Source: Pseudomonas aeruginosa PAO1
GTDB lineage: Bacteria > Pseudomonadota > Gammaproteobacteria > Pseudomonadales > Pseudomonadaceae
DNA: 64,000 bases
Assembly: GCF_000006765.1 (NCBI RefSeq)
Contig: NC_002516.2
Direction: 5' to 3' (one strand)
How positions within the stretch are numbered: position 1 is the stretch's first letter; each line of letters opens with the position of its first letter. Position numbers and translations under genes: made by a program. The notes under the pieces were generated by a model that made no database searches, was not told the DNA's origin, and was given only the letters and a program-made list of their open reading frames with translations. Below are positions 1 to 27,630 of the stretch, one piece after another.

Positions 1-1279
1 CGGGCTGTCCATCCTGCTGGGTCGTGCGCTGAACCAGGACACCTGGATCATCGCCCGCCATCCTGGCCTGAAGGATCTCGCCGAGCAGTGGACCGCCCTC
101 TACGAAGAACAGGGCAGCTACGCGGCCCAGGGCTTGCTGGAGCAACGCCGTCGCGACTACGGGATTTCCATCCAGGTGCTCGATGAAAGCGGCCAGCGCC
201 TGGTCGACGGCACCTACCTGCCGCGCCCCCACCACCGCCCGCCGCGCACCAGCGACCGCAACCTGCCGCGCTTCCCCTGGCGCCAGCTGAGCCAGGAATA
301 CGTCAGCCCGCAGAGCAACCATACCTATCTGTTCATCTACCGCATCCCGCACCCGGAGCTGGAGGCCTGGCACCGCGGCAGCCTGCTCTGGCCGCTCAGC
401 GCGCTGGGCATCGCACTGGTGGTGCTGACCCTGTTCAGCCTGCTGCTGACGCTGTCCATCACCCGTCCGCTGAACCGTCTGCGGCGCGCCGTGCACGACC
501 TCGGCCAGACCGCCTACCAGAAGGACAGCCTGGCCCGCCTGGCGCGGCGCGGCGATGAACTGGGCACCCTGGCGCGCGATTTCAACCGCATGGGCGAACG
601 CCTGCAAAGCCTGATCGGCAGCCAGCGTCAGTTGCTCCGCGACGTATCCCACGAACTGCGCTCGCCGCTGGCGCGCCTGCGCATCGCCCTGGCCCTGGCC
701 GAACGCGCCGAACCGGAAGCGCGGGCGCAGATGTGGCCGCGCCTGGAACAGGAATGCGACCGCCTGGAAGCGCTGATCGGCGAGATCCTCGCCCTCGCCC
801 GGCTCGACGCCGAACCCGGCGCGAGCCAACGGATCGCCCTGCTACCGCTGCTCCAGCGGCTACGCGAAGACGCCCTGCTGCTGGCTCCGGAACAGGATAT
901 CCGCCTGGAGGTGGCGCCTGACCTGAGCATCGACGGCTGGCCGGACATGTTCGAACGCGCGGTGGACAACCTGCTGCGCAACGCCGTGCGCTTCAACCCC
1001 GTCGGCCAACCCCTGGAGGTGCGTGCCAGCAGCGCCGGCGACTACCTGCGCCTGAGCGTCCGCGACCATGGGCCAGGCATCGCCGCCGAACTGCAGGAGC
1101 AGTTGGGCGAGCCGTTCTTCCGCGCACCCAACCAGAGCAGCCCGGGACACGGCCTGGGCCTGGCCATCGCCCGCCGCGCCATCGAGCGCCACGGCGGGCA
1201 CCTGCGCCTGGGCAACCATCCCGACGGCGGCTTCATCGCCACCCTCAGCCTGCCGCTACGGCGCAAGGCGACCGAATGA
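1..1279 (+). CDS. cpxS: HAMP-domain sensor histidine kinase (Cpx-type), 5' end outside window
   Basis: Frame open from position 2; TM helix, HAMP, H-box RDVSHELRSPL, N-box DNLLRNA, G1 DHGPG, G2 GHGLGLAI. Symbol from recalled synteny. Confidence 0.85.
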   Translation, partial: GLSILLGRALNQDTWIIARHPGLKDLAEQWTALYEEQGSYAAQGLLEQRRRDYGISIQVLDESGQRLVDGTYLPRPHHRPPRTSDRNLPRFPWRQLSQEYVSPQSNHTYLFIYRIPHPELEAWHRGSLLWPLSALGIALVVLTLFSLLLTLSITRPLNRLRRAVHDLGQTAYQKDSLARLARRGDELGTLARDFNRMGERLQSLIGSQRQLLRDVSHELRSPLARLRIALALAERAEPEARAQMWPRLEQECDRLEALIGEILALARLDAEPGASQRIALLPLLQRLREDALLLAPEQDIRLEVAPDLSIDGWPDMFERAVDNLLRNAVRFNPVGQPLEVRASSAGDYLRLSVRDHGPGIAAELQEQLGEPFFRAPNQSSPGHGLGLAIARRAIERHGGHLRLGNHPDGGFIATLSLPLRRKATE

Positions 1280-7993: not shown

Positions 7994-9007
7994 CTAGCCC
8001 GGGCGCTCCTGGCGGCGCGCCCGGTATTCGTTGGGCGTGCAGCCGAACCAGCGGCGGAATGCCCGGAAGAAATTGCTCGGATCGGCGAAACCCAGCAGGT
8101 AGGCGACTTCCAGCAAGGTCAGGCCGGGCTGCTGGAGATACTGTTCGGCCATATCCCGGCGCGTGTCGTCGAGCAGTTGCTGGTAGCTGGTGCCTTCTTC
8201 CTGGAGGCGCCGTTGCAAGGTGCGCTGCGACAGGTGCAGCGCCTGGGCCACCCGTTCGCGCTTGGGTTCTCCCTGCGGCAGCAGCCGGCACAAGGTCTGC
8301 CGGGTCAGATGGGTAATGCGGCTGGTACTGAAACGCGCCAGGTATTCGCCGGCGAAGCGATCGTGCAACTGGGCCAGCGCCTCGTTGGCCGAGGGTAGCG
8401 GCGTCTCGAGGTCGACGCGGGAAAACACCAGCGCGAACTCCTCGGCGTGAAAGCGCAGCGGCGCGCGGAACAGCTCGACATAGGGTGCCAGCGGCTCGCG
8501 GGGCGCGCCGGGCAGTTCCACCGCCAGCGGGTCCAGCGACCGGCCGGTGATCCAGCGGACCATGTCCACCAGGTAGGCCAGCGAGCATTCGGCACTCTGC
8601 GGTGGCGCCGGCAGGCGATCGCCATGCACCGTGACGCCGATTCGATAGCCCTGCGGCGTGCGGCGGAAAGTCAGGTCGGACGCTTCCGCGATGATCCGCT
8701 GGTAGCGCTCCAGGCGCGCGAAGCCTTCCGCCAGGTTGCGGCTCGACATCAGCGCATAGCCGACGACGTGGAAAGCCGGGCGCCGGACCCGGGCGATGTT
8801 CAGGGCGATCGCCGGGTTGCCGCTGAGCGCCACCGCACGCTGCCACAGACGGCTCATGGCGTCCTGCGGGAAGCGCGCGTCGGGGTCCTGCAAGGCCTGG
8901 TAGTCGAGGCCCAGCTCGGCGAACAGCTGGCGTCCGTCTAGGCCTTCCAGCTCCAGGGCGAGGACGATGCCCTGGACCCAGCTGGACAAGGTTGTACGTT
9001 CCGGCAT
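7994..9007 (-). CDS. AraC-family regulator (long ligand-domain type)
   Basis: LHLSQRTLQRRL and LGFADPSNFFRAFRRWFGCTP HTH motifs. Confidence 0.9.
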   Translation of the reverse strand: MPERTTLSSWVQGIVLALELEGLDGRQLFAELGLDYQALQDPDARFPQDAMSRLWQRAVALSGNPAIALNIARVRRPAFHVVGYALMSSRNLAEGFARLERYQRIIAEASDLTFRRTPQGYRIGVTVHGDRLPAPPQSAECSLAYLVDMVRWITGRSLDPLAVELPGAPREPLAPYVELFRAPLRFHAEEFALVFSRVDLETPLPSANEALAQLHDRFAGEYLARFSTSRITHLTRQTLCRLLPQGEPKRERVAQALHLSQRTLQRRLQEEGTSYQQLLDDTRRDMAEQYLQQPGLTLLEVAYLLGFADPSNFFRAFRRWFGCTPNEYRARRQERPG

Positions 9008-9149
9008 CGGTCTCTTCTTGTTCTGGCGGGAGGCACGCCGACCGTCGTCCGGCCTGGCGGCCCAAGGATACTAAACTGGCCCTGTATGTCATCCGCGACA
9101 TCGTGCGGCCCGCACTACACTGCGCGGACACAACGAGAGGAGGCATTCC

Positions 9150-9467
9150 ATGAGCAGCCCTGATGACGAGCGTTTCCACAGTTTCGCCGAGTTCTACCCC
9201 TACTACCTGCAGGAACACAGCAACGCGGTGTGCCGCCGCCTGCACTACGTCGGCAGCCTGCTGGTGCTGGCGGTGCTCTTCCACGCCGTGGCCAGCCAGC
9301 AGTGGCTATGGCTGCTGGCGCTGCCGCTGGTGGGCTACGGCTTCGCCTGGGTCGGCCACTTCGTCTTCGAGAAGAACCGCCCGGCCACCTTCAAGTACCC
9401 GCTGTGGTCGTTCATGGGCGACTGGGTGATGCTCAAGGACGCTTTCACCGGCCGCATCCGCTTCTGA
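9150..9467 (+). CDS. Mpo1-like (DUF962) membrane protein
   Basis: YLQEH...RRLHYVG and WVGHFVFEKNRPA motifs; AGAGGAGG RBS. Confidence 0.85.
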   Translation: MSSPDDERFHSFAEFYPYYLQEHSNAVCRRLHYVGSLLVLAVLFHAVASQQWLWLLALPLVGYGFAWVGHFVFEKNRPATFKYPLWSFMGDWVMLKDAFTGRIRF

Positions 9468-9683
9468 CCCATCCGCGCGGCTGGCCCCCGGGCCGGTCGC
9501 TCCCCCGGGACGACCGTCGGTCCCGGATCGGCGCGCTTTCCTGAACTATCGATCAGCTGTCACTGGCCGCCGCGCAAACGCTTGGTTAAGATTCCGCCAG
9601 CAACCTGGCCACCCGCCATTCCCCAGGCGGAAAGCTCACGAGGCCGAGCCGGGACGAAAATACACAGGGATCCTCTCCAGCGC

Positions 9684-11075
9684 ATGAAGCCTACCCTCCC
9701 CGACCGCTCGCCGACGAGCCGGTCCGTCGCGTCCATGCGTGAATACTATTCGCGCGTGCTGGCCTATATCGCCTGTGGCGCCAGCATCGCGGCGGGAACC
9801 TACACCCAGTATTTCAGCTACGGCATCCTCTGGATGGTGCCCTATGCGCTGCTCTACCCGCACCTGGCGTACCACCTCGGCCAGCGCTTCCGCCAGCACG
9901 ACCCGCGCAAGGTGACCCGCGCCCTGCTCGCGGTCGACGCCGTGCACTGTGGCCTGGGCATGGCGCTGCTCGGCTTCTCCGTGGTGCCCAGCCTGATGTT
10001 CCTGCTGGTGCTGAGCTTCACCGCACTGGTCATCGGCGGCCTGCGCCTGCTCGGCATGGCCTTGCTGGTATCGGCCAGCAGCGCCCTGCTGGTCGCCGTG
10101 CTCGTCGCCCCGCCGCTGCTGGGCAATACCCCGGTCGAGGTGGCCGCGGTCAGCATCCTGTTCTGCGGACTGTACATCTGCATCACCGCCTTCTTCGGCC
10201 ACCAGCAGGGCCTGCGCCTGGCCCAGGTGCGCCAGGAGATCGCCCGCGAGCAGGAAAAGGCCGCGCGGCTCGCGCGCAACCTGGCCAAGTACCTGTCGCC
10301 GCAGGTCTGGGAAATGATCTTCAGCGGCAAGAAGAGCGTGCGCCTGGAAACCCAGCGCAAGAAGCTCACCGTGTTCTTCTCCGACATCCGCGGCTTCACC
10401 GAGCTATCCGAGGAACTGGAAGCCGAGGCCCTGACCGACCTGCTCAACAACTACCTCAACGAAATGTCGAAGATCGCCCTCAAGTACGGCGGCACCATCG
10501 ACAAGTTCGTCGGCGACTGCGTCATGGTGTTCTTCGGCGACCCCAGCACCCAGGGCGCGAAGAAGGACGCGGTGGCTGCGGTATCGATGGGCATCGCCAT
10601 GCGCAAGCACATGAAGGTGCTGCGCCAGCAGTGGCGGGCCCAGGGCATCACCAAGCCGCTGGAAATCCGCATGGGCATCAACACCGGCTATTGCACGGTG
10701 GGCAACTTCGGCGCCGACACGCGCATGGACTACACCATCATCGGCCGCGAGGTGAACCTCGCCAGCCGCCTGGAAAGCGCCTCGGAAGCCGGCGAAATCC
10801 TCATTTCCCACGAGACCTACTCGCTGATCAAGGACGTGATCATGTGCCGCGACAAGGGCCAGATCGCGGTCAAGGGCTTCAGCCGCCCGGTGCAGATCTA
10901 CCAGGTGGTGGACTCGCGCCGCGACCTCGGCGCCGCGCCCAGCTACGTCGAGCACGAATTGCCCGGCTTCTCCATGTACCTGGACACCAACAACATCCAG
11001 AACTACGACAAGGAACGGGTCATCCAGGCCCTGCAACAGGCCGCCGAACGCCTGCGCGACAAGGTCATCCTCTAA
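9684..11075 (+). CDS. cyaB: Class III membrane adenylate cyclase
   Basis: MASE2-like TM region; FFSDIRGFT, IDKFVGD, DYTIIGREVNLASRLE; 463 aa from ATG 9684. Confidence 0.95.
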   Translation: MKPTLPDRSPTSRSVASMREYYSRVLAYIACGASIAAGTYTQYFSYGILWMVPYALLYPHLAYHLGQRFRQHDPRKVTRALLAVDAVHCGLGMALLGFSVVPSLMFLLVLSFTALVIGGLRLLGMALLVSASSALLVAVLVAPPLLGNTPVEVAAVSILFCGLYICITAFFGHQQGLRLAQVRQEIAREQEKAARLARNLAKYLSPQVWEMIFSGKKSVRLETQRKKLTVFFSDIRGFTELSEELEAEALTDLLNNYLNEMSKIALKYGGTIDKFVGDCVMVFFGDPSTQGAKKDAVAAVSMGIAMRKHMKVLRQQWRAQGITKPLEIRMGINTGYCTVGNFGADTRMDYTIIGREVNLASRLESASEAGEILISHETYSLIKDVIMCRDKGQIAVKGFSRPVQIYQVVDSRRDLGAAPSYVEHELPGFSMYLDTNNIQNYDKERVIQALQQAAERLRDKVIL

Positions 11076-21043: not shown

Positions 21044-21310
21044 ATGAAACTTGCCTCTGTCGTGTCCGCCGTCATCACCAGCCTCGCCCCCATGGCCTTC
21101 GCCCAGGACGTGGACAAGGACCCGGGCCGCGGCCTGCCGGTCGAGGAATACCACTACGGCATGCAACTGGACGTGAAGAATGTCCTGCACCGTACCGACA
21201 ATTCGACCAGGACCGGCGTAGTGCCGGTGACCGTGGTCTACGAGGACCATAGCGGCGAGCTGCACAAGATCCGCTTCCTCGAATGGGGCGGCAGCACCAG
21301 CAACGGCTGA
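21044..21310 (+). CDS. DUF2790 small exported protein
   Basis: Signal peptide; YHYGMQLDVKNV and GVVPV..YEDHSG motifs. Confidence 0.85.
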   Translation: MKLASVVSAVITSLAPMAFAQDVDKDPGRGLPVEEYHYGMQLDVKNVLHRTDNSTRTGVVPVTVVYEDHSGELHKIRFLEWGGSTSNG

Positions 21311-21342
21311 GCGGACGCCACGCCCTATCGTTCCGGCCCCCT

Positions 21343-22467
21343 TCAGGCCTGGCGGTAGGGCAACAGGCCGTGGGCCTCCTCGGCGTAGGCGCGCACACCC
21401 GCCCGCTCCTGTTCGAGGAACTGCGCCACGGCATCGCGCAGACCGGGATGCGCCAGGTAGTGCCAGGAGCGCGTCAGCACCGGCTCGAAACCGCGGATCA
21501 GCTTGTGTTCGCCCTGGGCGCCGGCGTCGAAGCGCGCCAGGCCGGCGCCGATGGCGAATTCCAGGCCCTGGTAGAAGCAGGTCTCGAAGTGCAGCCGGTC
21601 GAACTCGGCCAGGCATCCCCAGTAGCGCCCGTACAGGGTATCTCCAGCGACCAGGCTGAACGCCATCGCCACCGGCTTGCCACGCTGGTGGGCGAAGACC
21701 ACGCGGATCGCCTCCGGCATGCGCTCGGCCAGCAGGCCGAAGAACTCGCGGCTCAGGTAGGGATCGCGGTCGCGCACCAGGTAGGTGTTGGCGTAGCAGA
21801 GATAGACGAAATCCCACTCCAGTTCGGACAACTGGCCGCCTTCCCGCCATTCGAACTCGATGCCCTGTCCGCCGACCTGTTCGCGCTCCTTGCGCAGTTG
21901 CTTGCGCTTGCGCGAACTGAGGGCCTCGAGGAAGTCCTGGAAGTCCCGATAGCCGCGGTTGTGCCAGTGGTACTGGCAACCCAGGCGTTCGAGCCAACCG
22001 TCACGCGCGGCAAGCAAGGTGTCCGCCCGGGCGTCGGTGAAATTCACATGGATGCTCGACAGACCGCTCGCCTCGGCCTCCTCGCCAAGGGACGCGAGCA
22101 GCCCCTGCAACCCTTCGTCCTCGCCCAGCAGGCGCGCACCGGCGACCGGGGTGAAGGGCACCCCTACCAGCAGCTTCGGGTAGTAGCGGATACCGGCCCG
22201 CTGGCAGGCGTCGGCCCAGCTCCAGTCGAACACGTATTCGCCGTACGAGTGCGCCTTCACATAGGCCGGCAGCGCCGCGCACAGCCGCCCTTGCGGATCG
22301 CGCAGCACGCGATGAGCCGGGCGCCAGCCGGTAGCGGGCGTCACGCTGTGGCTGTCTTCCAGCGCGGACAGGAAAGCATGACGCAGGAATGGCTGGGCGG
22401 GAGGCAGCAAGGCGTCCCACTCGGCGGCGTCGATATCGGCAAGGGTGGCAAGCGTCTGGATCGGCAT
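21343..22467 (-). CDS. FemAB-like GNAT protein (PF04339 type)
   Basis: HSYGEYVFDWSWA, LYGRYWG, LHFETCFYQ, GAQGEHK motifs. Confidence 0.9.
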   Translation of the reverse strand: MPIQTLATLADIDAAEWDALLPPAQPFLRHAFLSALEDSHSVTPATGWRPAHRVLRDPQGRLCAALPAYVKAHSYGEYVFDWSWADACQRAGIRYYPKLLVGVPFTPVAGARLLGEDEGLQGLLASLGEEAEASGLSSIHVNFTDARADTLLAARDGWLERLGCQYHWHNRGYRDFQDFLEALSSRKRKQLRKEREQVGGQGIEFEWREGGQLSELEWDFVYLCYANTYLVRDRDPYLSREFFGLLAERMPEAIRVVFAHQRGKPVAMAFSLVAGDTLYGRYWGCLAEFDRLHFETCFYQGLEFAIGAGLARFDAGAQGEHKLIRGFEPVLTRSWHYLAHPGLRDAVAQFLEQERAGVRAYAEEAHGLLPYRQA

Positions 22468-22581
22468 GCGCGCCAGTCTGGCGCGAGACGCAAGGCAAGT
22501 GAAGCCGGTCGATGGAAAAAAGCGCCCGGCGGACCCGCGATGAAACCGCCCTTCTCCAAGCGAAGGCTTCAATCCATCCTA

Positions 22582-22697
22582 CGTAGAGCGCATAACGCCA
22601 ACGGCGTTATCCGCCGATACCCCGCCGCAACGGCGGAGCGAAAGCTGGGAACCCTCCGCGTAGGGCGCATAACGCCGGAGGCGTTATCCGCCGATAC
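22582..22697 (+). repeat. Two direct REP-type palindromic elements
   Basis: 39-nt copies CGTAG(A/G)GCGCATAACGCC-N-GGCGTTATCCGCCGATAC at 22582-22620 and 22659-22697; GTAG tetranucleotide plus hairpin. Confidence 0.85.
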
Positions 22698-22725
22698 CTG
22701 CCGCGACGGCATTCCCGATCGGGCC

Positions 22726-22884
22726 CTAGATCATGCCCAGCAGCAACAGGACCAACAGCACCACCAGCAATGCGCCGATGATCCCCGAGGGCCCGTAGCC
22801 CCAGTTGCGCGAATGAGGAAAGACCGGCAGGCCGCCGATCAGCAGCAGGATCAGGATGATCAGAAGAATCGTACCGAGACTCAT
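22726..22884 (-). CDS. DUF3309 small membrane protein
   Basis: GGLPVFPHSRNWGYGPSG signature. Confidence 0.85.
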   Translation of the reverse strand: MSLGTILLIILILLLIGGLPVFPHSRNWGYGPSGIIGALLVVLLVLLLLGMI

Positions 22885-22992
22885 GGGCGTCGCTCCTGTT
22901 CGGCTCATGGGGCAAAGGGCGGGAGATTCCGCCCTTGTAGTTCTCGACCCCCGCCGAGCAACGAAGATTCAATAAATCCGCGACCTCCAGCC

Positions 22993-23619
22993 TCAGTGGA
23001 TGACCTTGGGCGCCGGCCCCTTGAGCAGACGCATGAACATCAGCGCCACCGCCTGGGCGTCGCCGAGGGCGGTGTGGCGACCGCTGACCGGCACATCCAG
23101 GGCCCGCGCCAGGGTGTCGAAGCGCAGGTCGATGTGTGCGTCGGGAAAATGCCGGCTGACCTTCCGGTGGTACAGCGACGAAATCTCGATGGAGGGGTTG
23201 TGCAACTGTCGGTCGAGGAGCTGGCGCAGGTGCCGGTTCAGCACGGCGACATCGAACGACAGATAGTAGCCCAGCAGCGGTCGGTCGCCGATGAACGCCA
23301 GCACCTGGCGCAGGGCCTGCTCCAGCTGCAACTGTCCCTCCAGGTCGGCGCGGCGCAGCTTGTGGATGCGGATCGACTCCGCATCCAGGCTCGGCGGCGG
23401 CTCGACGTAGAGTTCCAGGCGCTCGCCCATGACCAGTTTGCCGCGCCGCACCAGCACCGCGCCGATGCTGAGGATGTCGGCACGACGCGGGTCGAGGCTG
23501 GTGGTCTCGAGATCGAGGGAGATCACTTCTTCCGCCTCGACCGCCTCGTGCATCCACCAGTACAGCCGGCGGCGCCAGCCCGGCCAGCGGCTGTCGGGCA
23601 ACTTGACCATGGTGTTCAT
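22993..23619 (-). CDS. DEDDh 3'-5' exonuclease (DnaQ-like)
   Basis: DLETTSLD, YYLSFD, HTALGD; ATG overlaps the upstream stop (ATGA). Confidence 0.9.
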   Translation of the reverse strand: MNTMVKLPDSRWPGWRRRLYWWMHEAVEAEEVISLDLETTSLDPRRADILSIGAVLVRRGKLVMGERLELYVEPPPSLDAESIRIHKLRRADLEGQLQLEQALRQVLAFIGDRPLLGYYLSFDVAVLNRHLRQLLDRQLHNPSIEISSLYHRKVSRHFPDAHIDLRFDTLARALDVPVSGRHTALGDAQAVALMFMRLLKGPAPKVIH

Positions 23620-25415
23620 CGGGTCTCCAGGTGGAATTGACGGGCCACGCTCTGCTTGAACTTCTTCACCACATGCAGGCCGTAGCGCAGCATGTCGCGA
23701 TCGTGGCGGCTCATGCCGCTGACGTCCAGGCCCTGCTGGCGACCGTCGCGTTGGCCGGCCAACTGGCGGGTCAGGCGCAGTTGCAGGAACAGCTCGAAAG
23801 ACTCGCTCAGGTCGTCCGCCAGGCGTGCTTCGAGGACCTTGTGTCGCTTCAGCGCCTCGATCCGTGCCAGGGTCCCGCGGGTCTCCAGGCCTTCGCGCAG
23901 GGCCAGGGTGCGGATGCCGTGGACGATGGGGAAGATCCCGCCGCGCTTGAGATCGAGGCGGGCGTCCTGGGTTTTCAGCTGGCCGAGGAAGGTCAGCGGC
24001 GTATCGAATTGCAGGGCCGCCGCCGCGATATCCGCCAGCCAGCGCTCGCCGCCGTCGGCGAAACCGCGCAGTTGCCAACGCAACGGCTCGAACAGCTGCA
24101 GGTTGCCGGCCACCGGCCAGGCATCGGCCAGGATCGACAGGCGCAACAGCTGCTCCGGCTTGCCCTCCAGCAGCGTCCCGCGCAGCTCCGCCTGCCAGGC
24201 CGCCAGCGGCTTGCACCATTCCGGCCGACTGGCCATCACCCCTCCGGGACAGGGCGGATAACCGAACTCCAGCAAGGCCGCGCTGAAGCGCTGCATCATC
24301 GCCAGGGCCTGTTCCTGCGGCAGATCGTCGGCCAGGACCAGGGCATTGTCCTGGTCGGTCTTCAGCAACTGCTCGCCGCGTCCTTCGCTGCCCATCACCA
24401 GCAAGCAGCAGCGCCCGCGCAGGGTTGGCGGCAGCAACAATTCGAAAAGCCGTTCGAGCAATTGCTCGTTGAGCGCGCTGACCAGCTGCATGATGAAGCG
24501 CAGGCGGATACCGTTGCCGGCCAGGGTAGCGATCAGGGTGTCCAGGGTTTCCGCGCAGCGGCGCAGGTCGCCGAGGTCGTCGGCGCGGGCGATGCGCAGC
24601 GCCAGGACGTGGGAATGGGTGGAGAACAGGCTGAGCACCTGGGTCAGGTGCAACAGGCCGATCACCTGACCGTCCTCCGTGACCGCGACCCGCTCGATAC
24701 GCTGGCGCGTCATGAGGATCATCGCGTCGAACAGGAAATCGCCCAGTTCGACGCTGGCCAGCGGACCATGGGCCAACGGCCCGATCGCCTCCAGCTCGCT
24801 GCGCCCGTCGCGGAAGTGCGCGCTCATGAGGTCGGTGCGGGTGACGATGCCGAGCTCGGGCCCGTCCCTCTCCAGCCGCACCAGCAGGGCATCGGCGCCG
24901 TGGCTCAATTGCAGGCGCGCGGCGTCGCCGAGGGACAGCGAGGCCTCCACCTCCAGCGCCGGCAGCAAGTGCTCGCGGGCGATGCGGGTAAGGATGAACT
25001 CGGCAAGGTTCTGCCCGTCGCGCTGGGCCAACTGGCGCTTGGCCGCCAGGTCGGCCTGGAAGAACCGGGCGAAACCCGGGTTCTCCCCGCACAACTGGTG
25101 GAAGCAACTGGCCGGCAGTTCGTAGACGATGCTTTCCTCGATCGCCAGGTAGCGATGCTTGCTGCTGCCGGAAAACAGCCCGCGGACGTCGAACAGGTCG
25201 TCCGCGGCGTACTGGGCGAACACTCGCCCGTCGTCGCCGCGCTCCTCGACCACGCCCTTGAGCAGGACGAACAGCCCGGGGACCGCCGAACCGGCCTCCA
25301 GCAAGGTTTCCCCCGGCGCGTAGTAGCCTACGCTGAGGGCCTGCTTGAGGGTCTCGCGCTGATGGGGACGCAACTGGTCGAAGGGCGGCGAGGCGAAGTT
25401 GAAACTGTCAGGCAT
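23616..25415 (-). CDS. cNMP-binding / CBS / DUF294 nucleotidyltransferase protein
   Basis: N-terminal cNMP-like domain, CBS pair, MGSEGRGEQLLKTDQDN NTase motif, DLKRGGIFPIVHGIR helical domain. Confidence 0.88.
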   Translation of the reverse strand: MPDSFNFASPPFDQLRPHQRETLKQALSVGYYAPGETLLEAGSAVPGLFVLLKGVVEERGDDGRVFAQYAADDLFDVRGLFSGSSKHRYLAIEESIVYELPASCFHQLCGENPGFARFFQADLAAKRQLAQRDGQNLAEFILTRIAREHLLPALEVEASLSLGDAARLQLSHGADALLVRLERDGPELGIVTRTDLMSAHFRDGRSELEAIGPLAHGPLASVELGDFLFDAMILMTRQRIERVAVTEDGQVIGLLHLTQVLSLFSTHSHVLALRIARADDLGDLRRCAETLDTLIATLAGNGIRLRFIMQLVSALNEQLLERLFELLLPPTLRGRCCLLVMGSEGRGEQLLKTDQDNALVLADDLPQEQALAMMQRFSAALLEFGYPPCPGGVMASRPEWCKPLAAWQAELRGTLLEGKPEQLLRLSILADAWPVAGNLQLFEPLRWQLRGFADGGERWLADIAAAALQFDTPLTFLGQLKTQDARLDLKRGGIFPIVHGIRTLALREGLETRGTLARIEALKRHKVLEARLADDLSESFELFLQLRLTRQLAGQRDGRQQGLDVSGMSRHDRDMLRYGLHVVKKFKQSVARQFHLETR

Positions 25416-25442
25416 GGCTCATCTCGCTGTAACCGGGACGCT

Positions 25443-25481
25443 GAAACGAAAGGCGGCGGACCGGAAATCCGGCCGCCGCCT
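25443..25481 (-). terminator. Hairpin with broken U-tract between actP and the DUF294 gene
   Basis: GGCGGCGG-A-CCGG/CCGG-CCGCCGCC stem followed by TTTCGTTTC on the minus strand. Confidence 0.55.
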
Positions 25482-25504
25482 CGGGCTACGTCTTCACGTA
25501 GCGC

Positions 25505-27160
25505 TTAGTGGGCCACCGCGCCAGAGGCGCCCAGGCCGGTCTGGGAACGGATGAACTGCGGGAAGAAGCGCGCCCGCTCCTCGTCGGCCGCCGCCGACTT
25601 GTCGGTGATGGAGAAGAACCAGATACCGACGAAGGCGACGATCATCGAGAACAGCGCCGGGTACTCGTACGGGTAGATGGCTTTCTCGTGGCCGAGGATC
25701 TGCACCCAGATGGTCGGGCCGAGGACCATCAGGCCCACCGCGGTGATCAGGCCCATCCAGCCGCCGATCATGGCGCCGCGGGTGGTCAGCTTCTTCCAGT
25801 ACATGGAGAGCAGCAGCACCGGGAAGTTGCAGCTGGCGGCGATGGAGAAGGCCAGGCCGACCATGAAGGCGATGTTCTGCTTCTCGAAGAGGATGCCGAG
25901 CACGATGGCGACCACGCCCAGGGCCACGGTGGTCATCTTCGAGACCCGCAGCTCGTCCTTCTCGTTGGCCTTGCCGCCCTTGAACACGCTGGCGTACAGG
26001 TCATGGGAGACGGCCGAGGCCCCGGCCAGGGTCAGCCCGGCGACCACCGCGAGGATGGTGGCGAAGGCCACCGCCGAGATGAAGCCGAGGAACAGGCTGC
26101 CGCCCACCGCGTCGGCCAGGTGCACCGCCGCCATGTTGTTGCCGCCGATCAGGGCGCCGGTGGCGTCCTTGAAGTCCGGGTTGGTGCTGACCAGCAGGAT
26201 CGCGCCGAAACCGATGATGAAGGTCAGGATGTAGAAGTAGCCGATGAAACCGGTGGCGTAGAACACGCTCTTGCGCGCTTCCTTGGCGTCGCTGACGGTG
26301 AAGAAGCGCATCAGGATGTGCGGCAGCCCGGCGGTGCCGAACATCAGCGCGAAGCCCAGGGAGAATGCCGAGATCGGATCCTTGACCAGGCCGCCCGGAC
26401 TCATGATCGCCTCGCCCTTCGGATGCACCTTGATGGCTTCGGAGAACAGCGTGCTGACGTCGAAGTTGACGTGCTTGAGCACCATGATCGCCATGAACGA
26501 GGCGCCGGAGAGCAACAGCACGGCCTTGATGATCTGCACCCAGGTGGTCGCCAGCATGCCGCCGAACAGCACGTAGAGCACCATCAGGATGCCCACCAGG
26601 ACCACCGCGACATGGTAGTTGAGGCCGAACAGCAGCTCGATCAGCTTGCCGGCGCCGACCATCTGCGCGATCAGGTAGAACGCCACCACCACCAGCGAGC
26701 CGCAGGCCGACAGGGTGCGGATCTGCTTCTGCTTGAGGCGGTAGGAGGCGACGTCGGCGAAGGTGTACTTGCCCAGGTTGCGCAGGCGCTCGGCGATGAG
26801 GAAGAGGATGATCGGCCAGCCGACCAGGAAGCCGATCGAGTAGATCAGGCCGTCGTAGCCGGAAGTGAAGACCAGCGCCGAAATACCCAGGAAGGATGCC
26901 GCCGACATGTAGTCGCCGGCGATCGCCAGGCCATTCTGGAAGCCGGTGATGCGGCCGCCTGCGGCATAGTAGTCGGCCGCCGAGCGGTTGCGCTTGGATG
27001 CCCAGTAGGTGATGCAGAGGGTCGCGCCGACGAAGGCGACGAACATGACGATGGCCGAGACGTTCAGCGGCTGGCGCTGCACGTCGCCGGTCAGCGCGTC
27101 GGCCCAGAGGGCCGGAGCGAAGGCCGCAAGGCCGAGCGCGGCAAGGAGACGAGCGATCAT
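25505..27160 (-). CDS. actP: Cation/acetate symporter (SSS family)
   Basis: [16 protein letters not shown] and [16 protein letters not shown] signatures. Confidence 0.95.
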
Positions 27161-27468
27161 TGCTGCGCCTCCTTGAGGATTTCCTGGTTCAGGCTGTCGA
27201 ACTCGCCGTTGGCGCGACGCACGTACAGGCCGGTCAGGATGAACGCGGCAAGGATCAGTCCGACACCCATCGGGATGCCCCAGGTCACGGACGAATCGGG
27301 ACTGATACGCGCGCCCAGCAGCTGCGGCTGGAAAGCGATCAGCAGGATGAATATCACGTAGAGGCCAAGCATGATCGAAGAAAGTATCCAGGCGAAACGC
27401 TCTCGCTTGGCCACCAACTCCTTGAAGCGCGGATTGGTATCAATCCGCTGGTAGATGCTGTCGTTCAT
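27157..27468 (-). CDS. DUF485 (YjcH-like) membrane protein
   Basis: Two TM helices; [10 protein letters not shown]; ATGA-coupled to actP. Confidence 0.9.
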
Positions 27469-27543
27469 TGTTTTTATCCTCACAGCGGGGTGACGCGGAA
27501 TGTCGTCGATATCCACTGTAGGACGCTGGTGCAAGCGCTCCAG

Positions 27544-27557
27544 ACGACTTTAGTCGT
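27544..27557. promoter_or_regulatory. Palindromic operator, candidate CrbR/ErdR site
   Basis: ACGAC-TTTA-GTCGT perfect inverted repeat 76 bp upstream of the operon start; regulator identity is inferred. Confidence 0.5.
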
Positions 27558-27630
27558 AGCGTTTCGCCAGCCGCTCTAGACCGGTATTCCCGGGCCTTCC
27601 GGCAGATTCCGGAGCCAGCCTTCGGCAAGG

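Follow-up and report, generated by a model that had tools for sequence, protein, structure and literature searches.

The 64-kb stretch of Pseudomonas aeruginosa PAO1 DNA analysed here (hereafter the window; G+C ~67%) carries, behind the acetate symporter gene actP, a gene for a sensor-nucleotidyltransferase, PA3233 (NT), followed by a gene for a stand-alone DEDDh 3'-5' exonuclease, PA3232 (EXO). Our results show that these two genes are kept together in nearly all the genera sampled and that the pair is linked to genes of acetate uptake and activation across phyla. We tentatively propose that NT and EXO act as the writer and the exonucleolytic eraser of an energy-gated protein (oligo)nucleotidylation at the entry of acetate, propionate and pyruvate, the protein substrate, the inhibitory sign of the mark, the eraser role and the ligand being the parts of this proposal that we infer.

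All four genes of the locus lie on the minus strand. The first is yjcH (PA3235; 27157..27468; 103 aa), which codes for a small membrane protein of the DUF485 family (PF04341, E 1.3e-32), the small partner of ActP. It is followed by actP itself (PA3234; 25505..27160; 551 aa), coding for an SSS-family cation/acetate symporter (PF00474, E 3e-132) that scores 1071 bits with TIGR02711 and 999 bits with NF006903, for which the cut-off is 750. NT (23616..25415; 599 aa) contains four Pfam domains, and EXO (22993..23619; 208 aa) matches PF00929 (E 1.1e-20, 75.2 bits). Since NT is 99% identical to a P. aeruginosa cluster (n=1135 sequences) and the gene order of a complete P. aeruginosa chromosome is the same (OpuAC, DUF485, SSF, NT, RNase_T, DUF3309, FemAB-like), the four genes were assigned to PA3235-PA3232; the exact NT protein is encoded on thousands of contigs. 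The orthologues in other species are PP_0354 (NT) and PP_0353 (EXO) of Pseudomonas putida KT2440, and Pflu5625 of Pseudomonas fluorescens SBW25.

A first-pass annotation, made from the letters of the window, had described yjcH-actP and NT-EXO as coupled through ATGA, and both overlaps are present. The actP ATG (27160-27158) and the yjcH TGA (27159-27157) share the ATGA at 27160-27157, and the NT TGA and the EXO ATG overlap in the same way within 'gacccgATGAacacc', a junction that may couple the translation of EXO to that of NT. NT and actP are not coupled and are separated by a spacer of 89 nt.

Linkage of the pair to acetate genes

The genome scan, performed on one genome per species with an NT alignment as the query, returned 80 loci, and these were collapsed to 27 genera because the sample is heavy in Vibrio. 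EXO lies directly downstream of NT on the same strand in 79 of the 80 loci, the exception being cut by a contig end, and the two genes are adjacent in 26 of 27 genera. A start-stop overlap like that of the window joins them in about 16 of the other 79 loci. Within 10 kb of NT, an SSS transporter is encoded in 22 of 27 genera, a DUF485 or DUF4212 small subunit in 20/27, a CrbS-like SLC5-PAS-kinase in 19/27 and Acs in 13/27. At least one of these four is found in 25 of 27 genera, and the two genera without any linked acetate gene are represented by contigs of 4 kb and 8.7 kb.

The arrangement of the genes changes between lineages. In Vibrionaceae, crbS and an MFS gene are transcribed in one direction and NT, EXO and acs, in this order, in the other. 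In Oceanospirillales/Halomonadaceae, crbS is divergent from a series formed by the DUF4212 gene, the SSS gene, NT and EXO, while Pseudomonas, Thalassolituus and Uliginosibacterium share the order DUF485, actP, NT and EXO on a single strand. The linkage spans two SSS subfamilies, each with its own small subunit. Two other genes recur in these neighbourhoods. The gene between crbS and NT in 49 loci of Vibrionaceae, divergent from NT, is of the MFS_1_like type (for example at 8546-9712 (-) of locus L081), and in Halomonadaceae/Oceanospirillum a Crp-family regulator is encoded a few genes downstream of NT-EXO (L080, 13632-14516 (-); also L069, L075 and L078).

A metagenome scan, with an alignment led by a divergent member of the family, returned another 80 loci that are 37-49% identical to the lead sequence and range from 35% to 70% in G+C. 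EXO comes right after NT in 56 of the 70 evaluable loci and is found elsewhere in the cluster in 3 more; in 8 of the 14 evaluable loci without an adjacent EXO, none was present anywhere in the contig. The recurrent order is NT, EXO, DUF485 or DUF4212, SSS and Acs, all in the same direction, and an SSS or Acs gene is present in 26 of the 34 loci of at least 9 kb. The named homologues of one metagenome EXO belong to Nitrospirota, and looking up the neighbourhood from the EXO side placed NT immediately upstream in 3/3 cases, one of them on a named Nitrospirota metagenome-assembled genome, with the order NT, EXO, DUF4212, SSF and Acs. One of these EXO-side loci (L164) has genes for an SLC5-PAS histidine kinase and a sigma54 response regulator ahead of NT, and another (L166) has sigma54 response regulators upstream. 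Campylobacterota also encode NT.

Given that a genome has a handful of SSS genes, adjacency to one of them by chance would be expected in a few per cent of cases, and for this reason we consider the association between NT-EXO and acetate genes to be real and ancient. Co-occurrence with SSS transporters and acs was the comparative check suggested by the first-pass annotation, and its outcome is strongly positive, both at the level of genera and in Nitrospirota.

Nitrospirota-type clusters often contain two NT paralogues, one with EXO and one without, the second usually located beside a sigma54-dependent response regulator. Such loci include L166 (1120-3015 and 5095-6996), L165 (13049-14681), L086, L092, L103, L112, L128 and L148. 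The region downstream of NT genes that have no EXO was inspected for a hydrolase that could serve as an alternative eraser and none was seen, the genes found there coding for an RNA methyltransferase, a DUF2887 protein, an MFS transporter, a pseudouridine synthase and a sigma54 regulator. Apparent long EXO reading frames in the metagenome loci were discarded as artefacts of open reading frame (ORF) extension, and no NT-EXO fusion protein was noticed among the homologue lengths listed.

Domains, residues and predicted folds of the two proteins

NT has a four-domain architecture of the COG2905 type that is also seen in its homologues. A cyclic nucleotide monophosphate (cNMP)-binding-like domain (residues 31-111; 25083..25325 (-); PF00027, E 1.9e-10, 41 bits) is followed by a CBS pair, or Bateman module (residues ~150-263; 24627..24968 (-); PF00571 in two stretches, 45.8 bits), by a DUF294 nucleotidyltransferase core of the pol-beta type (residues 290-420; 24156..24548 (-); PF03445, E 1.4e-43, 148.5 bits) and by the helical 'substrate-binding' domain DUF294_C (residues 458-594; 23634..24044 (-); PF10335, E 3.1e-39, 134.5 bits). 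The last two scores exceed the Pfam gathering cut-offs of 21 bits for DUF294 and 22.5 bits for DUF294_C.

The description of the 599-aa protein as a cNMP-like/CBS/nucleotidyltransferase with an intact GS..DxD motif was borne out. The motif MGSEGRGEQLLKTDQDN occupies residues 341-357, and its catalytic G342-S343...D354-x-D356, encoded at 24345-24392, does not vary at any of the four positions across 35 NT sequences sharing 38-81% identity with the protein of the window. D431 is likely to be the third carboxylate, judging from the alignment. The NT alignments also have an invariant block in DUF294_C, D488-x-K490-x-G-G-I-F495-P496. This D-x-K-x-G-G-I block presumably resembles the D/N-x-K-x-G-x-G-G-[IL] of GlnD/GlnE, a likeness that we use only as a lead. 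DUF294_C itself has been grouped with the C-terminal domains of GlnD/GlnE in the KNTase_C/HEPN clan (PMC3710099).

The AlphaFold2 model of NT has a mean predicted local distance difference test score (pLDDT) of 82.8. Among the 50 Foldseek matches listed, the first for the catalytic half is the N-terminal domain of GlnE (1v4a, E 1.5e-7), DrrA stands at rank 7 (6yx5_B, TM-score 0.69 on the target) and the adenylylation domain of GlnE at rank 16 (3k7d_B); the other top matches are CRP/FNR/PKA-type domains aligned with the N-terminus, including the sensor domain of DNR (2z69). In the model, the nearest structures to the catalytic core together with the C-terminal domain are those of GlnE and DrrA, both protein AMPylases. 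The enzymes cGAS, CD-NTase, OAS and PAP are absent from these 50 matches, beyond which a weaker similarity is possible, and the CCA/poly(A) enzymes, class I or II, bear no resemblance to NT in the fold search. A sequence and profile search of PDB with NT matched CBS and CRP-type domains only and left the catalytic half unmatched. In PADLOC, NT matched no model of a defence system or CD-NTase and EXO matched generic DEDDh models only; a reading of the locus as a defence system was rejected.

The sensor half of the protein is less conventional at its N-terminus. In an alignment with the PKA-R and PKG cassettes, F75-D76-V77 replaces the canonical FGE, and the usual phosphate-binding cassette, F-G-E ... 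R-[ST]-A, is not present in the cNMP-like domain. Within the NT alignment F75 and D76 are invariant, as are H87, Y89 and A91, and R88 is variable. This pattern suggests that the domain is likely to bind a ligand other than cAMP or cGMP, as in several sensors of the CRP/FNR family. The CBS pair is ordinary and its sequence matches in PDB are to CBS proteins.

The DUF294 core is represented by 3330 sequences at 50% identity (E <= 0.001) in a collection of 1.84 billion proteins. The 300-480-aa representatives, considered as candidates for shorter DUF294 architectures, proved to be mostly fragments of ~600-aa proteins, so length alone is no guide to architecture in this family.

EXO belongs to the NCBIfam equivalog NF006601 (256 bits, cut-off 189). 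All the DEDDh motifs attributed to it by the first-pass annotation are present, namely D36 and E38 (Exo I, D-x-E), D123 (Exo II), and H182 and D187 (Exo III, H-x4-D), and at each of these positions at least 95% of 116 family members have the same residue. Its AlphaFold2 model has a plain DnaQ fold (mean pLDDT 89.3), with the first 30 residues being poorly conserved and modelled with low confidence. The best Foldseek match is a CRISPR-associated DnaQ domain (8h18, TM-score 0.85 on the target), and the further neighbours are the PolC exonuclease, Pol III epsilon, the DinG exonuclease domain and Cap18, then Orn and RNase T.

Mutant data, proposed mechanism and rival explanations

The locus has been studied before as part of the CrbS/CrbR (MxtR/ErdR) regulon, and PA3232-PA3235, PP_0353-PP_0354 and Pflu5625 are one and the same locus. 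Sepulveda & Lupas placed Pflu5625 in the CrbS/CrbR regulon and its PAO1 orthologue in the actP unit, and found no phenotype for the Pflu5625 deletion (PMC5715377). Henriquez and colleagues showed that ErdR binds the PP_0354 promoter and that acetate induces the gene (PMC8402216). The P. putida operon is among the genes that depend most on MxtR/ErdR (bioRxiv 10.64898/2026.09.07.749794), and the PA3232-PA3235 proteins of PAO1 increase ~16-fold on propionate (PMC9765439). In work by the same group as the ErdR study, the PP_0353 (EXO) null grows poorly on pyruvate, like the actP-I null, and the PP_0354 (NT) null is unaffected (PMC9927547; bioRxiv 10.64898/2026.09.07.749794); a yjcH null has the same pyruvate defect (bioRxiv 10.64898/2026.09.07.749794).

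In the mechanism that we tentatively favour, CrbR would activate the promoter upstream of yjcH, and a leaky terminator past actP would leave NT and EXO at a lower level than the transporter. PA3233 would be a GlnE/DrrA-like protein nucleotidyltransferase, with its activity set by the Bateman module, most likely through a reading of adenine nucleotides or energy charge, and co-set by the CRP/FNR-like ligand domain, probably without classical cAMP binding. The enzyme would attach one or a few nucleoside monophosphates (NMPs) to a protein of monocarboxylate uptake or activation, for which ActP/YjcH or the DUF4212-SSS equivalent, or Acs, are candidates, and the modification would inhibit its target. 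PA3232 would cleave the phosphodiester and release 5'-NMP from the 3'-end or from the protein-O-NMP, so that the mark would be trimmed or removed. NT-EXO would be, in this form, an NMP-based counterpart of the AcuA/AcuB/AcuC acetylation switch that acts on Acs in Firmicutes.

Each element of the proposal has its own grounds. An inhibitory NT product that is removed by EXO is suggested because loss of EXO mimics loss of actP or yjcH on pyruvate and loss of NT is silent. A protein acceptor is favoured because of the GlnE/DrrA-like fold and the precedents of GlnE/GlnD and MntA, and control by adenine nucleotides is suggested by the presence of a Bateman module. By analogy, an oligo-NMP chain on a protein would have a free 3'-end, which is the type of bond cut by DEDDh enzymes, and in a single Tyr-O-AMP the phosphodiester would be of this kind too, with another leaving group. 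That a brake is needed is known, since ATP is depleted by excess Acs activity (PMC11910552).

Several observations weigh against this reading. Some NT paralogues have no exonuclease. The catalytic half of NT has no GlnE (PF03710) or GlnD_UR_UTase (PF08335) match at Pfam E <= 10 and matches DUF294/DUF294_C only, so that the link to GlnE and DrrA, in the predicted model, is a similarity of fold at 13-17% identity and not membership of their families. The model and motifs of EXO resemble those of an ordinary DnaQ-type nuclease, with DNA-proofreading and CRISPR-associated domains as its closest neighbours, and we know of no DEDDh enzyme that acts as a de-AMPylase or de-NMPylase. The genetics fit any model in which EXO destroys the product of NT, not only one with a mark on a protein. 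Deletion of PP_0354 or PP_0353 has no effect on growth on 20 mM acetate (PMC9927547; bioRxiv 10.64898/2026.09.07.749794), and growth on propionate is slowed in both mutants instead of being affected in opposite directions (bioRxiv 10.64898/2026.09.07.749794). The propionate defect is absent in actP and yjcH mutants. Such a phenotype could mean that there is a second target, for example Acs, or that cycling is needed, and none of the models accounts for it cleanly. The literature searched reports no activity, substrate or modified protein for any member of the family, nor de-nucleotidylation by EXO.

The first-pass annotation had named the lack of an acetate-transport phenotype among the results that would speak against a writer/eraser module. 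Formally this is what the two deletions give on 20 mM acetate, but ActP itself, which matters only when the substrate is scarce, is dispensable under that condition and the result does not refute the module. The writer/eraser idea was supported in part, by the retained catalytic residues, the GlnE/DrrA-like fold, the genomic linkage and the P. putida genetics, which fit two opposing enzymes; cyclic-nucleotide sensing was not supported, the cNMP domain being without the canonical contacts.

The strongest competitor, which we nevertheless regard as unlikely, is a free nucleotide signal, where NT would make a small nucleotide or short oligonucleotide (a linear or cyclic messenger, or one of the NpnN type) according to energy status, EXO would degrade it, and the signal would act on SSS, CrbS or Acs. 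The tight NT-EXO pairing is what such a system would show, DEDDh enzymes are known to act only on nucleic acids or oligonucleotides, EXO has Orn, RNase T and the CBASS-associated Cap18 among its neighbours in structure, and the pol-beta superfamily includes messenger synthases; the pyruvate genetics of P. putida would fit the build-up of a harmful or inhibitory product equally well. What turns us from this signal towards a protein mark is that the nearest solved folds of NT are GlnE and DrrA, with none of the messenger-type or polymerase relatives named above in the 50 matches listed, that its C-terminal domain is of the GlnD/GlnE type, that PADLOC recognised no defence or CD-NTase protein in it, and that the neighbourhood contains no conserved candidate receptor gene beyond the pathway proteins.

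A role in RNA tailing and trimming appears still less probable. Here NT would add untemplated nucleotides to a specific mRNA, sRNA or tRNA of the acetate regulon and EXO would trim them. A writer/eraser relation of a pol-beta nucleotidyltransferase and a DEDDh nuclease is established for tRNA CCA ends, and EXO falls in the RNase_T family of Pfam and resembles RNase T and Orn, but Pfam recognises no RNA-binding domain in either protein, NT does not have the PAP/CCA head-neck-body architecture and has protein AMPylases as its neighbours in structure. A conserved gene for a non-coding RNA was not noticed beside the pair, although no Rfam search was made. Degradation of mRNA was speculated on by the authors of PMC9927547. 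We give very little credence to the absence of any functional coupling, under which EXO, a DnaQ paralogue, would serve general DNA/RNA housekeeping or repair and would only happen to be transcribed together with an unrelated sensor. The generic fold and motifs of EXO and the different phenotypes of the two deletions would be expected in such a case, but it has to be reconciled with same-order, same-strand adjacency in 26/27 genera and in Nitrospirota, with an NCBIfam equivalog of its own for EXO, with the recurrent start/stop overlaps in the window and in about 16/79 other loci, and with the co-regulation of both genes by CrbR/ErdR. The weight remaining beyond the protein mark and these three explanations goes to something else.

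Comparison with known systems shows where reversible nucleotidylation by NT-EXO would be familiar and where it would differ. GlnE and GlnD resemble NT in having a pol-beta core with G-[SG]...D-x-D and, after it, a helical C-terminal domain from the same clan, and each joins a writer and a remover activity under metabolite sensing. Unlike them, NT has CBS and CRP-like sensors in place of ACT domains or control by PII/glutamine, and its putative remover is a separate DEDDh nuclease instead of a second nucleotidyltransferase domain (GlnE) or an HD domain (GlnD). DrrA (SidM) and SidD, which carry out Rab1 AMPylation and de-AMPylation in Legionella, share with NT-EXO the GlnE-like fold and the encoding of writer and eraser in separate genes. 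DrrA is a secreted effector that acts on a host GTPase and its eraser has a PP2C-like phosphatase fold, whereas NT-EXO is proposed to be a cytoplasmic housekeeping regulator with a DEDDh partner.

In the type VII toxin-antitoxin system MntA/HepT, a pol-beta nucleotidyltransferase adds several AMPs serially to a protein tyrosine (PMC7641770, PMC13000451), and this enzyme also works with a domain of the HEPN/KNTase_C clan. An oligo-AMP chain of the MntA type would, by analogy, be a natural substrate for a 3'-5' exonuclease. However, MntA is a minimal enzyme without sensor domains or a dedicated nuclease, in a mobile toxin-antitoxin context, while the HEPN-like domain of NT is fused and non-catalytic and the context is carbon metabolism. 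AcuA/AcuB/AcuC, found beside acsA in Bacillus, follow the same regulatory logic as we propose for NT-EXO, combining a writer, an eraser and a CBS sensor of adenine nucleotides; AcuB, a CBS protein in Firmicutes, responds to AMP or Ap4A and governs the deacetylase by which Acs is reactivated (PMC13121692, PMC13039410). The chemistry is lysine acetylation and not the presumed nucleotidylation, and the families are unrelated save for CBS, so this is an analogy and not homology. The CCA-adding enzyme and RNase T also oppose a pol-beta nucleotidyltransferase to a DEDDh nuclease at a 3'-end, and Orn, acting on pGpG, is a DEDDh enzyme dedicated to the degradation of a small nucleotide, but neither case involves an operon pair, sensor domains or a link to acetate genes.

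Neither the locus nor its regulation nor the idea of nucleotidylation is new to the literature. Protein nucleotidylation was predicted in 1999 by Aravind & Koonin, as cited in PMC5715377, and the idea is in print there and in bioRxiv 10.64898/2026.09.07.749794. The first-pass annotation stated that it knew of no biochemical characterisation; indeed none was found for NT, EXO or the DUF294 family in the literature searched, but the operon, the regulon and the deletion mutants had already been described. That literature covers regulation and mild growth phenotypes, and neither enzymology nor broad comparative genomics of NT-EXO was found in it. Nothing equivalent was found in print for how broad and strict the NT-EXO pairing is, for its linkage to two symporter families and Acs across phyla, for the GlnE/DrrA-like predicted fold, for the degenerate cyclic-nucleotide cassette, for the conserved attenuator described below or for the writer/eraser reading of the existing mutant data.

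The MxtR/ErdR system governs the use of acetate and propionate in Pseudomonas and Vibrio, including during infection. If the proposal is true, nucleotidylation would be a third chemistry in the control of acetate activation, besides transcription and lysine acetylation, EXO would be the first DEDDh nuclease to remove a protein modification, and the tie of NT-EXO to symporter and Acs genes across phyla would be explained. As a mechanism it would belong with GlnE/GlnD, as a variant whose type of eraser has no precedent. Since unbalanced acetate activation drains ATP, such a switch would also be relevant to the engineering of production strains fed on acetate. A more general form of the proposal, which we put forward as doubtful, is that the DUF294 family and its DEDDh partner form a widespread reversible protein (oligo)nucleotidylation switch with a 3'-5' exonuclease fold as the eraser, gating monocarboxylate uptake or activation by energy charge in Proteobacteria, Nitrospirota and probably Campylobacterota.

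Promoter, actP-NT spacer and flanking features

Upstream of yjcH lies a CrbR/ErdR-type 'ACTU' inverted repeat, the 17-mer TACGACTAAAGTCGTCT (27542..27558 (-)), with its centre ~82 nt upstream of the yjcH ATG. It agrees with the P. fluorescens sites of PFLU1813 (TAATACTAAGGTCGTCT) at 14/17 positions and of PFLU0447 at 13/17. The published CrbR site lies at -52 to -36 of a start site located 36 nt before the ORF (PMC5715377), and the location of TACGACTAAAGTCGTCT agrees with this geometry. The bare 10-nt ACTU core, [GT]AC-N4-GTC, occurs in the window about as often as chance predicts (50 copies against 52 expected), and for this reason the assignment relies on the extended match and on position. 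No sigma70-like site was found in a consensus promoter scan. Abutting the yjcH start codon is an A-rich motif of the Crc/Hfq type, AAAAACAA (pattern AAnAAnAA; 27468..27475 (-)); such motifs were defined, and reported at the actP and acs leaders, in PMC5715377, and the match suggests a Crc/Hfq function for this copy.

The spacer between actP and NT contains a structure resembling an intrinsic terminator, a putative attenuator with two hairpins and a T-tract (25444..25502 (-)). The first hairpin, a perfect 7 bp (GCTACGT-GAAG-ACGTAGC, 25502-25485), stands directly past the actP stop, and the second, G+C-rich and of 12-13 bp (25480-25452), runs into UUUCGUUU, with the T-tract TTTCGTTT at 25451-25444. 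The spacer RNA folds at -47.8 kcal/mol (z = -5.45), and 0/200 shuffles were as stable. A terminator scan missed the hairpin owing to a one-base bulge, and it was recovered by RNA folding. Four other Pseudomonas loci, Thalassolituus and Uliginosibacterium also have a hairpin and T-run at this place, with differing sequences, and no ACTU-like core was found in the spacer of the window. Such a leaky terminator would hold NT and EXO below the level of the transporter, which would suit catalytic regulators better than stoichiometric subunits.

Some other features of the window were considered and set aside. Long ORFs of 600-785 aa at 21283-23640 (+), 23631-25508 (+), 25508-27361 (+) and 22993-25107 (-) were rejected as genes, being antisense to or out of frame with the real genes in DNA of 67% G+C. 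At the edge of the window, a partial histidine kinase (2-1279 (+)) contains the HisKA/HATPase region only and scores 92 bits with the CrbS profile; this is a generic kinase match and was not counted as evidence for crbS/mxtR.

A gene for a 52-aa DUF3309 membrane peptide (22726-22884 (-)) starts ~110 nt past the EXO stop and may or may not belong to the same transcript as EXO. The interval between them contains a weak hairpin (22934-17) followed by only three T.

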